A DNA stretch of 64,000 bases from positions 62,001-126,000 of IMG/VR virus record IMGVR_UViG_3300021440_000013; one strand, 5' to 3'. Below are positions 8,531 to 10,891 of this stretch, one piece after another; the first letter of the stretch is position 1, and every line of letters begins with the position of its first letter. The position numbers were made by a program, and so were the translations under genes. The notes under the pieces are model-generated. The model was given only the letters and a program-made list of their open reading frames with translations. It did not search any database and was not told the DNA's origin.

Positions 8531-9850
8531 ATGGCTCTACCGACCGTATTTAATGACACCAGCTCCACCCAGCGCAACTTTGTTCGCTCGCTCGTTAGGG
8601 GCGCATACGCACTCCAGCAACTGCGCATCCAAGCAGGAAACCGCATCGTCACCAACTATAAAGTCAAGCTCGGGATAGAGCCTGGCAAGGCAGAGAAAGA
8701 CACCAAGATCGCCGCAGAGATCCTCGATGAGTTGCGGAAAAACTACGCCCTTATCACAGACGGGATCGCGGACGAGATCGCTGCTGGAGAAGTGCTCGAG
8801 GATGAGGACGAGGACGAGGACGAAGAAGAGGACGACACAGAAAGCCCGCAAACAAAAACCCGTATTGGGAGGCTTCCGACACCTAAAAAGTTTAAGGAAC
8901 AAGGCCTCATCACAAACTACACCGAACTGATATTGGTCAACCAATACTTCGTCATGTGTAGTGCCGAGGAGCGTGAGTTCTCAAGATTGAAAAAACTGCT
9001 TGAGATGATCCCTATTTACAAGAACTTCCTCAAGAAGATCAGAGGTATGGGTCCCGCGATGGGTGGGGTGATTGTGAGTGAGATCGATATCCACTTGTCG
9101 GAGTATCCGTCGTCGATCCATGCTTACGCTGGACTCGACACGACGATCATCGGCTACTACGTCGATAAAAAGGGTGAAGAACAGACCGTTCGTGGGGACG
9201 AAGTTGCCAAGTTCTACGAAGATGGCGATCTGGATAAGGTTATGACCGTCAATGGTTTTGAAGTGAAGTACCGTTCGGTTGGTCGTTCCCGCAAAGGACC
9301 GTGTCTCGTAAAGCGCGAATACGTCTCAAAAGACGGGAAGCTCAATGTTCGCGACTCCATCACGTTTAACCCGTTTCTTAAAACCAAGCTCGTAGGTGTG
9401 TTGGCGGGAAGCTTTTTGAAACAATCCAGCACTTTTGTTGACGGAAAGAAAATGGGTGTGGGAAAGCGCACCGCATTGGCTAAGCAACTTGGTTGGAAAA
9501 TGGATTCGAAAAGTGAACTCACTTCCACTAAGCAGGTTGACGCGTTTCTTTCGCGTCAAGGTTATGAGCTTGAGTTTGTGATGGGTGAATGGGCGGAGTA
9601 TTACTACAACTACAAGCACCGTATTAGCAACATGCCTGAGCATGCCGAGAAGACTGAACTGCATCGGCACAACATGGCGGTGCGCTTTATGATCAAGCGC
9701 TTCCTTGTTGAGCTTTATAAGGTTTGGCGTGCAATGGAGGGTTTGCCTGTCGCTGAAGAATACAGCGTTGCTAAGCTTGGCATGGCGCATGGTAAGGCCA
9801 AGGGTCGCCCTGATGCACAAGGTCTTCAAAAGCTCGTTAAACGCGCCTAA
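8531..9850 (+). CDS. Nop/IS110-fold RNA-binding protein without RuvC/HNH domain (TasA-like)
   Basis: N-terminal coiled coil 'LQQLRIQAGNRI', HhH 'IRGMGPAMGGVIVSEI', 'SSIHAYAGLD', 'FNPFLKTKL', 'HNMAVRFMIKRFLVELYKVWR' as in the IS110/Transposase_20 C-terminal domain; no DEDD domain; adjacent dual-repeat array. Confidence 0.8.
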   Translation: MALPTVFNDTSSTQRNFVRSLVRGAYALQQLRIQAGNRIVTNYKVKLGIEPGKAEKDTKIAAEILDELRKNYALITDGIADEIAAGEVLEDEDEDEDEEEDDTESPQTKTRIGRLPTPKKFKEQGLITNYTELILVNQYFVMCSAEEREFSRLKKLLEMIPIYKNFLKKIRGMGPAMGGVIVSEIDIHLSEYPSSIHAYAGLDTTIIGYYVDKKGEEQTVRGDEVAKFYEDGDLDKVMTVNGFEVKYRSVGRSRKGPCLVKREYVSKDGKLNVRDSITFNPFLKTKLVGVLAGSFLKQSSTFVDGKKMGVGKRTALAKQLGWKMDSKSELTSTKQVDAFLSRQGYELEFVMGEWAEYYYNYKHRISNMPEHAEKTELHRHNMAVRFMIKRFLVELYKVWRAMEGLPVAEEYSVAKLGMAHGKAKGRPDAQGLQKLVKRA

Positions 9851-9909
9851 GTAACATCAGTGTTTTTAAGGGAGGGGTGTTAAGCCCCCTCCCTTATCAA
9901 GTACAGACT

Positions 9910-10828
9910 ATTCATCCGTTGTTGAAGAGCTCGCCATAGGCTTTTACACACCCAATCAAAAGTAGCGCAGCAAGACAGAAAATACACCCAAGCAGAAAAA
10001 TTGAATCGGTGCTCCGAAGAAACCCAAGAATACCTACTGTATCAATCAAGAAAAGACACCCATTATACTTCTATGTATCAGTAACGAGTAGACACCCAAG
10101 TTTACTAAGTGAGTCAGTTAATAGAAAACACCCAAATAAAATTAGCGCACCATGATAGAAAATACACCCAAGTAAGTTTAGTGAATCAATAAGCAACATA
10201 CACCCAGTAAGAACGTAATAGAATCAGTGATAACAAACTCACCCATTGGAGTTTAGTGTGTCATCAGTTATTATAAAACCATAGCAACAATACGCACCTC
10301 TTTACACTAAACACCCAAGCCGCGACAGTGCGTCACTCTAGAATAGACACCCGGACCGAAAAATACATCAAAAGAAACAAACTCACCCATTGAAACGAAA
10401 TGCGCCAAAAGACTCAGCTTCACTCAAGTGTAGATAGCGCATCAGTAACGAGAAAACTCACTCAATGAAAATTAGTGAGCCACTATGAAGTAAACACCCA
10501 ATTGTAAATTAGCGCATCAGAGAAATTTACACACCCACGCTACCAAAGTGTGTCATTGAATCATAGACACCCATATTGCAACAACGCATCACCTGTTTCA
10601 AATACACCCAGCAATAAAAAGTGTGTCAGATATGCCGACATGCCCAAAGCAGCGAAGCGCATCAAGATCAACTATTACACCCAATGGTACGAAAATGCAG
10701 CATTCCAGTTCAGTCATCCAAGCTACGAGACTGAGCCATAGTGTTAAAATCACCCAGATGATCGCAGCGAACCAAGGCCGATTAGACACCCAATCATTTG
10801 TAGTGGATCGATGGATGTGAGTCACCCA
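9910..10828 (+). ncRNA. TIGR-like dual-repeat guide RNA array, 25 units of ~36 nt
   Basis: CACCCA-type motif ends at 9954, 9990, 10026, 10062, 10098, 10134, 10170, 10206 ... 10756, 10792, 10828 (period mostly 36, some 37-39), alternating with ARYGHRYCA; ~9-nt variable spacers between. Confidence 0.85.
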
Positions 10829-10850
10829 CTCGTTTTGAATGTTGTTTAAA

Positions 10851-10891
10851 GATGACCCAGAGCTTAACGGCTCTGGTGTCATTTTCTTTTT
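10851..10891 (+). terminator. Terminator closing the array
   Basis: gatgacccagagc...gctctggtgtcat hairpin plus T-run. Confidence 0.65.

Follow-up and report, generated by a model that had tools for sequence, protein, structure and literature searches.

Positions 8531 to 10,892 of the DNA analysed here, a window of 64,000 nucleotides (positions 62,001 to 126,000 of IMG/VR record IMGVR_UViG_3300021440_000013), carry a gene for a protein of 439 amino acids and, behind it, a long series of short repeats. This raises the question whether gene and repeats form an RNA-guided system and, if so, of which kind and against which DNA it is directed. As outlined below, it is very probable that the locus is a dual-repeat TIGR-Tas system of the nuclease-free TasA type, carried by an uncultivated jumbo phage of ~217 kb. 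TIGR-Tas systems are recently described RNA-guided DNA binders and cutters that act independently of a protospacer-adjacent motif (PAM) and meet with strong interest in genome engineering. The locus is a member of this already known family, which was described in 2025, and introduces no new principle. In 2026, 6,685 TIGR-Tas arrays were catalogued, the dual-repeat guides of the published catalogue number ~65,000, and the TasA layout is the commonest architecture of the family. What is added here is the setting, namely TIGR-Tas in jumbo phages with RNA polymerases of their own, and a long-form TasA with extra folded sub-domains.

The array (9919-10,828, + strand) comprises 25 units. In each of them, two spacers of 9 nt alternate with two repeats: spacer A is followed by the loop repeat AGYGNRYCA, and spacer B by the edge repeat ANACACCCA. 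Units were delimited by cutting after each copy of the hexamer CACCCA, which occurs, with at most one mismatch, 24 times on the + strand between 9949 and 10,854; the copies lie 36-39 nt apart, one degenerate copy being skipped at two places. Exactly 36 nt were measured for 18 of the 25 units, and the remaining seven are 37-39 nt long. Column statistics on the 36-nt units place the two conserved 9-nt blocks at positions 10-18 (AGYGNRYCA) and 28-36 (ANACACCCA). At positions 1-9 and 19-27 the information is near background, and these variable blocks correspond to ~50 spacers in the array. Thus, the division into 9+9+9+9 nt with a period of 36 nt and about 50 spacers, proposed in an initial annotation made from the letters of the stretch, was recovered. 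Both repeats end in CA (CCCA in the edge repeat, YCA in the loop repeat) in a symmetric framing of 9 nt, and both have a conserved first A, which is invariant in the edge repeat and present in 16 of 18 loop repeats. Their 5' box is A or AG, not UG, and a base pair between the boxes could not be shown.

This pattern is far beyond chance. Exact CACCCA hexamers are found 18 times in 970 nt compared to 23 times in the other 63 kb of the window, and 20 of the 24 CACCCA matches in the array have a partner at a distance of +36 to +39, compared to 7 of 298 elsewhere. The self-identity of the array at lag 36 is 0.41, against 0.268 ± 0.016 (z = 9.1). With a position matrix built from the array units, no second array was found in the window, and the scan showed that the array is strand-specific. 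Tandem Repeats Finder left the array undetected because its repeats are too short and interspersed, and no Rfam family was matched by it. Folding of the array RNA is no stronger than that of shuffled sequences (z = -0.37), which agrees better with protein-scaffolded guides of the dual-repeat type than with stem-loop guides. Spacers are likewise not duplicated within the array beyond the level of shuffles.

At its 5' end, the array is preceded by a degenerate edge repeat at 9910-9918 (+ strand), which in the sequence itself reads ATTCATCCG. At its 3' end follow a degenerate partial terminal unit or trailer (10,829-10,859, + strand) and an intrinsic terminator with a 14-bp stem and a T-run (10,851-10,892, + strand; z = -3.9), so that the terminator at the array end was correctly noted in the initial annotation. 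A GC-rich 13-bp hairpin with no U-run after it lies between the stop codon of the gene and the array (9867-9896, + strand; -23.4 kcal/mol, z = -4.0). Similar hairpins are present in a related viral locus, L086, and in the Ralstonia jumbo phage phiRSL1. They are absent in compact relatives, in which the array begins right after the stop codon, and the hairpin was therefore rejected as a family-wide feature. It might serve to stabilise the tasA mRNA at its 3' end or to attenuate read-through. A scan for sigma-70 promoters gave nothing useful and is probably irrelevant, since the phage encodes its own RNA polymerase.

The gene upstream of the array, tasA (8531-9850, + strand), is an intact open reading frame (ORF) for a long-form Tas protein of 439 amino acids with a coiled coil and a Nop domain. 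Searches with the single sequence of this ORF are weak or misleading: in Pfam, only the IS110 C-terminal domain PF02371 was matched, below threshold (E = 0.054), and in PHROG the family 4285, 'transposase', was matched at 3e-20. A family profile built from 69 homologues matches the solved TasR chain 9mty at E = 5e-18 and TasH (SpTasH) at E = 7e-11, and the NCBIfam model TIGR_Tas_endo (NF052498) was matched at E = 3e-19. An AlphaFold2 model computed with the homologue alignment (predicted local distance difference test, pLDDT, 87.9; predicted template modelling score, pTM, 0.83) consists of two long N-terminal helices, which form a coiled-coil hairpin, and a subsequent helical domain. In a Foldseek search of this model against the PDB, matches 1-10 are all TasR or TasH with a probability of 1.0, and no other structure reaches E <= 0.001. 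Next in rank are the IS621 bridge recombinase (0.96) and archaeal Nop5 (0.93-0.94), a ranking that supports the Nop fold. The best structural match in BFVD is a compact phage homologue of 287 amino acids (TM 0.90). The product of 8531-9850 is therefore homologous to the solved TasR and TasH proteins in sequence and in predicted fold. The initial annotation had named a Nop-fold Tas protein with an IS110-type C-terminus. The first part agrees with profile, NCBIfam and predicted structure, which all point to TasR/TasH first and then to IS621 and Nop5. As to the second part, the Pfam match to the IS110 C-terminal domain stays below threshold.

The same matches might be read as a decayed transposase of the IS110 family that lies beside unrelated repeats. 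PHROG 4285 and the weak PF02371 match would fit such a remnant, as would the annotation of the phiRSL1 homologue, ORF034, as a transposase. However, no catalytic domain of the DEDD/RuvC-like type was found in the protein (no match to PF01548), its N-terminus is a coiled coil, and in fold it resembles IS621 only distantly and less than TasR/TasH. Moreover, the ORF is intact, the region of gene and array is 100% identical in the three places read, which come from three samples, the family counts more than 1,200 members, and an array is kept beside the gene in 73 of 79 loci. A transposase remnant is thus already contradicted and appears extremely unlikely.

Does the protein carry a nuclease? A conserved motif near its N-terminus corresponds in the alignment to TasR residues 123-136, just past the RuvC domain, and only ~22 residues lie N-terminal of the motif. 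Among the Pfam matches of the 439-residue ORF there is no nuclease family, neither HNH nor RuvC. Since the protein starts at the coiled coil of TasR and no nuclease family was detected, it is assigned to TasA. This agrees with the lack of RuvC and HNH asserted in the initial annotation, as does the lack of a significant PDB match for the inserted region described below. In the C-terminal loop, Y411 and H420 (9761-9790, + strand) form a candidate Tyr/His dyad that is invariant in the 69 relatives; the counterpart of Y411 in the alignment is the catalytic Y289 of SpTasH. A Tyr/His dyad was reported to process the guide RNA precursor (pre-tigRNA) and to be specific to dual-repeat systems. By this alignment, Y411 and H420 are candidates for the pre-tigRNA processing residues.

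Pairing of the gene with an array extends to its relatives. More than 1,200 homologues were found, many of them on contigs of 130-315 kb. A lack of arrays beside homologues, which the initial annotation had named as refuting its reading, was not observed: of the 79 related viral loci, 73 have an array with a 36-nt period no more than 1.5 kb away from the gene, and the array lies downstream in 49, upstream in 23 and on both sides in one. Four of the six loci with no array are cut by contig ends. The loop repeats of these relatives are variations on one theme, AACGAGTCA, AGCGAGCCA or AGTGTATCA, and their edge repeats are AGAAAACCA, AGACAACCA or forms ending in CACCCA. Locus L086, whose TasA is 61% identical, has the same repeats in ~12 units and different spacers, none of which convincingly occurs in the window array. 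Therefore, spacers turn over while the repeats persist. The trailer is partly kept in L086 as well: the sequence 3' of the last edge repeat (10,829-10,856) resembles L086 3377-3405, though the spacers differ. Judged from this sequence similarity, the trailers of the window phage and of L086 suggest a conserved old array end.

A search of the DNA against cultured phages gave no near match, and the only homologue found in a cultured phage is ORF034 of phiRSL1 (26% identity). This gene and the unannotated gap of 1.4 kb downstream of it are a TasA gene and a dual-repeat TIGR array of 36 units (3932-6395 of the fetched locus L001, which corresponds to NC_010811.2 13180-15643; array at 14267-15561 of the record). 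The 36-guide TIGR-TasA locus of phiRSL1 offers a native pair of phage and host for tests of function. Jumbo phages are absent from the published TIGR accounts that were searched, and a 2026 review of jumbo phages does not contain TIGR. In view of this silence, the jumbo-phage setting, the long-form TasA and the phiRSL1 lead represent modest additions.

How such a system would operate can be drawn from its published relatives. Transcription of tasA and of the array would run along the + strand, and a TasA dimer would bind the precursor via the CA- or CCA-ending boxes of edge and loop repeats; a symmetric reading of edge and loop repeats by the Tas dimer was reported. A cut inside every edge repeat, for which the Y411/H420 loop is the probable agent, would then turn the precursor into 25 tigRNAs of ~36 nt, the length at which tigRNAs were found bound to TasA. 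Each ribonucleoprotein might unwind a site of 18 bp, with spacer A on one strand and spacer B on the other. The site would consist of spacer A and, 0-2 bp further on, the reverse complement of spacer B, and would require no PAM. In the family, the two spacers were reported to pair each with one strand of an 18-bp site, whose halves may lie 1-2 bp apart; no PAM is needed, and tandem-spacer targeting and 3' overhangs of 8 nt were described. As it has no nuclease, the complex would stay bound and may block transcription or replication of its target. The initial annotation regarded the role of TasA as unresolved, which is partly outdated: according to 2026 preprints, TasA binds DNA and reversibly represses transcription.

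The closest published system is that of FpTasA from Flavonifractor plautii (Faure et al., 2025; PMC12045711), a solo protein of coiled coil and Nop domain whose gene is accompanied by an array of 36-nt period. The dual-repeat TIGR-TasA systems described there share with the window array the two alternating repeats, two 9-nt spacers per unit, a truncated edge repeat at the start, a terminator at the end and a phage setting. In contrast, the protein of the window is ~145 amino acids longer owing to three insertions, its repeats start with A or AG where theirs start with UG, its array has 25 units where theirs most often have 5-15, and its carrier is a jumbo phage. The reports on MbTasA (10.64898/2026.09.09.750476) and PlTasA (10.64898/2026.08.11.744272) describe nuclease-free proteins with RNA-guided DNA binding and reversible repression of transcription, which is the mechanism proposed here for the window TasA. 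PlTasA uses stem-loop guides, and stem-loop Tas proteins do not have the Tyr/His processing loop; the window locus is of the dual-repeat type and has the Tyr/His pair. TaTasR (PDB 9mty) and SpTasH (PDB 9w03, 9w04, 21kl), the best profile and fold matches, share the coiled-coil dimerisation hairpin and the Nop domain with the window TasA. However, they carry an N-terminal RuvC or HNH domain and cut both strands, whereas the window TasA begins at the coiled coil. The IS110/IS621 bridge-RNA recombinases and the archaeal box C/D protein Nop5 have in common with it a Nop-type RNA-binding fold (Foldseek probability 0.93-0.96) and, as proposed for the window system, a bipartite guide that is read by a symmetric dimer. 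Unlike these, the window system has neither a DEDD recombinase domain nor fibrillarin or L7Ae partners, and its guides come from an array and not from a single structured RNA. Nuclease-free CRISPR systems (type IV and type V-M; compared in PMC12045711) also encode array guides on mobile elements and interfere by binding and not by cutting. In the window system, the protein fold is unrelated, two spacers of 9 nt would pair with opposite strands, no PAM would be needed, and no adaptation machinery is known.

The extra length of the window protein results from three insertions relative to the compact 295-residue TasA P0112 (38% identity). Insertion 1 (residues ~85-117, elsewhere put at ~88-113; 8783-8881, + strand) is a disordered acidic run at the tip of the coiled-coil hairpin with a pLDDT of 50-60 that is absent from P0112; within it, Tandem Repeats Finder detected a 6-nt repeat at 8797-8835. 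Insertion 2 (residues ~206-250; 9146-9280, + strand) adds strands and a helix to a beta-rich sub-domain (residues 204-276; pLDDT >93), and insertion 3 (residues ~304-353, with the start elsewhere put at ~298; 9440-9589, + strand) is a confidently modelled alpha/beta sub-domain inside the Nop domain. Both reach a pLDDT >90 in the full model as well as in a separate model of residues 200-356, and both are conserved in all relatives of at least 385 amino acids. Against the PDB, the model of residues 200-356 found no significant match (best E = 0.15, probability 0.41), and it thus gives no sign of a hidden nuclease.

It could be argued that the long-form TasA is not a plain binder and that the structured insertions (~204-276 and ~298-353) add an activity or a surface that recruits partners, which would make it a functionally different effector. 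Confident folding and retention in all relatives of that size would agree with this, and so would the distribution of the long form: many long-form proteins are encoded on contigs of 114-315 kb, including 10 of the 11 long-form viral loci that were fetched. In addition, TasR, TasH and PlTasA have their strand-separating loop or hairpin at the place where insertion 2 is found. However, the inserted region matches neither a solved structure significantly nor anything nuclease-like, the insertions contain no Pfam domain, and in the invariant columns no catalytic motif made of conserved acidic or histidine residues was noticed. We therefore consider a different effector quite unlikely, and the assignment to nuclease-free TasA is retained.

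Which DNA is bound? The target strand was taken to show spacer A first and then the reverse complement of spacer B, a geometry that we derived from the reported 8-nt 3' overhangs. In the 64-kb window outside the array, no site with up to two mismatches was found for the 25 guides in both half-site orders and with gaps of 0-2, and the number of sites with three mismatches equals that of a control with shuffled pairing. Scanning 0.62 Mb of related loci gave only scattered matches with two mismatches. Six guides were searched as exact 18-mers in IMG/VR and gave 0, 1, 1, 3, 0 and 1 matches, which is at chance level. The three matches of one guide fall into two independent contig groups, and the contigs that were hit are unrelated, range from 35 to 70% GC and contain no match to a second guide. 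One pattern, that of guide 23, was found in two unrelated viral contigs, each time with TG as the 2-nt gap (L095 1504-1523 and L096 535-554). These sites lie in different genes, one for a protein of 1,037 amino acids, whose function is unconfirmed, and one for a protein of 156 amino acids, and the shared 20-mer holds a 12-nt palindrome; for these reasons the matches were judged to be chance and rejected as targets. The search with spacer A joined to the reverse complement of spacer B, which the initial annotation had suggested, therefore gave no convincing target in the window, in IMG/VR (six guides) or in the related loci.

A possible role of such systems in 'regulation of the viral lifecycle' is named in the literature, and the locus sits among + strand genes of unassigned function. 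The guides could thus serve the phage's own genes, for instance by timed silencing of early or late promoters, and not be directed at foreign DNA. Against this stands the lack of sites with up to two mismatches in the window, which covers ~30% of the phage genome: were the sites of all guides spread at random over the genome, this result would be expected with a chance of ~0.7^25, and general self-targeting is therefore unlikely. The six guides searched in IMG/VR have no exact site in the full genome of their own phage, which is present in that database. Furthermore, the 36 guides of phiRSL1 have no site with 0-1 mismatches in its complete genome of 231 kb, and their counts of sites with 2-3 mismatches equal the shuffled control. 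The absence of guide sites from the phages' own DNA (all of phiRSL1 and 30% of the window phage) is negative evidence that this study adds, and it makes self-regulation improbable. Judging by these negative results only, the guides are most likely directed against foreign DNA, be it that of the host or of competing mobile elements. Inter-phage competition or host gene silencing had been put forward as possible roles in the initial annotation.

Several observations weigh against the assignment to a dual-repeat TIGR-TasA system. The repeats differ from those of TasR in their 5' box, which is A or AG and not UG, and in the edge repeat a UG-like box is not clearly recognisable. Seven of the 25 units are off-length, the loop repeats are degenerate in several units (3, 5, 9, 11 and 13), and some of the guides may thus be inactive. 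The score against NF052498 (69.7 bits) is below the curated cut-off of 100, which identifies the protein as a homologue and not an equivalog of the modelled Tas endonucleases, and H420 sits two residues later than H296 of SpTasH. Insertions 2 and 3 could alter the mechanism. In the searches above, no target was found for any window guide. Finally, the steps of the mechanism are taken from published relatives. Despite these points, we consider the assignment very probable for the reasons given above, and the identification made in the initial annotation is thus supported.

The irregular units might also mean that the system is present but partly decayed, with many of its 25 units no longer functional as guides. 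In addition to the off-length units and the degenerate loop repeats, the lag-36 identity of the array peaks at 0.55-0.58, compared to ~0.65 in many compact relatives. On the other hand, the published family tolerates spacers of up to 12 nt, the ORF and the Tyr/His pair are intact, and the array is identical in each of the three places read. Partial decay therefore seems unlikely, and a dual-repeat TIGR-TasA system remains the preferred assignment.

The composition of the spacers is biased. In the window array, spacers have a GC content of 34% (A 39%, T 27%, G 20%, C 14%) in a window of 48% GC with balanced strands, and purines make up 59% of the spacer bases (p = 0.002). The spacers of phiRSL1 have 43% GC in a genome of 58% GC, and ~50 related arrays show the same A-rich and C-poor bias regardless of the GC content of the locus. 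Such a bias is not expected from random sampling of double-stranded DNA, which leaves selection on the guides or a bias of the targets as explanations. The purine- and AT-rich bias across the family thus constrains models of spacer origin and of binding targets. It is tempting to speculate, if only tentatively, that jumbo phages including phiRSL1 carry a distinct long-form lineage of TasA and that the insertions, which match no solved fold, together with the purine- and AT-rich guides reflect a specialised role, such as the silencing of AT-rich promoters of hosts or rival elements. We regard this as a doubtful proposal; if it were true, phiRSL1 and Ralstonia would allow the natural function of TIGR-TasA to be tested, for the first time, in a native system that can be cultured.

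The carrier of the locus was described as a jumbo phage in the initial annotation, and this is justified by the size of its contig and by its phiKZ-type RNA polymerase genes. The window belongs to JGI contig Ga0228700_1000012, and the source samples are JGI 3300022744, 3300021440 and 3300022161 (SRR7614061). The contig of 216,876 bp was obtained in two samples with different start points, and the same length with a shifted start suggests a complete genome. Phage genes in the window are located at 41495-43525, 45948-47162, 50567-51802, 52685-52770 and 59289-60518 and comprise an NAD-dependent DNA ligase, two phiKZ-type split RNA polymerase beta genes, an SbcD-like nuclease and a tRNA-Leu(UAA). 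The best cultured match of the split RNA polymerase beta is that of Burkholderia phage FLC9 (41%), followed by PhiPA3 (36%). The phage thus encodes its own RNA polymerase, yet it is far from any cultured phage (<=41% identity).

Close upstream of tasA, a protein with an HDOD domain is encoded at 7248-8063, with one ORF of 90 amino acids in between. An HDOD protein is likewise found upstream of the TasA of a further relative (L085, 74% identity), a few small ORFs away. Among the neighbouring ORFs, no ParB-like partner gene, the mark of TasA-TasParB operons, was detected with Pfam and NCBIfam, and only the HDOD protein was matched. Elsewhere in the window, two TnpB-like ORFs are located at 18509-19690 and 32157-33305; both match PHROG 506, 'transposase', and the first also matches Pfam Cas12f1-like_TNB. 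They represent a second, unrelated family of RNA-guided proteins in the window phage. Near the first copy lie two repeats of ~200 nt with 86% identity (18097-18293 and 18329-18525). The first part of the window (144-5393) encodes the C-terminal part of a giant protein of 2,507 amino acids with FG-GAP_2 repeats.

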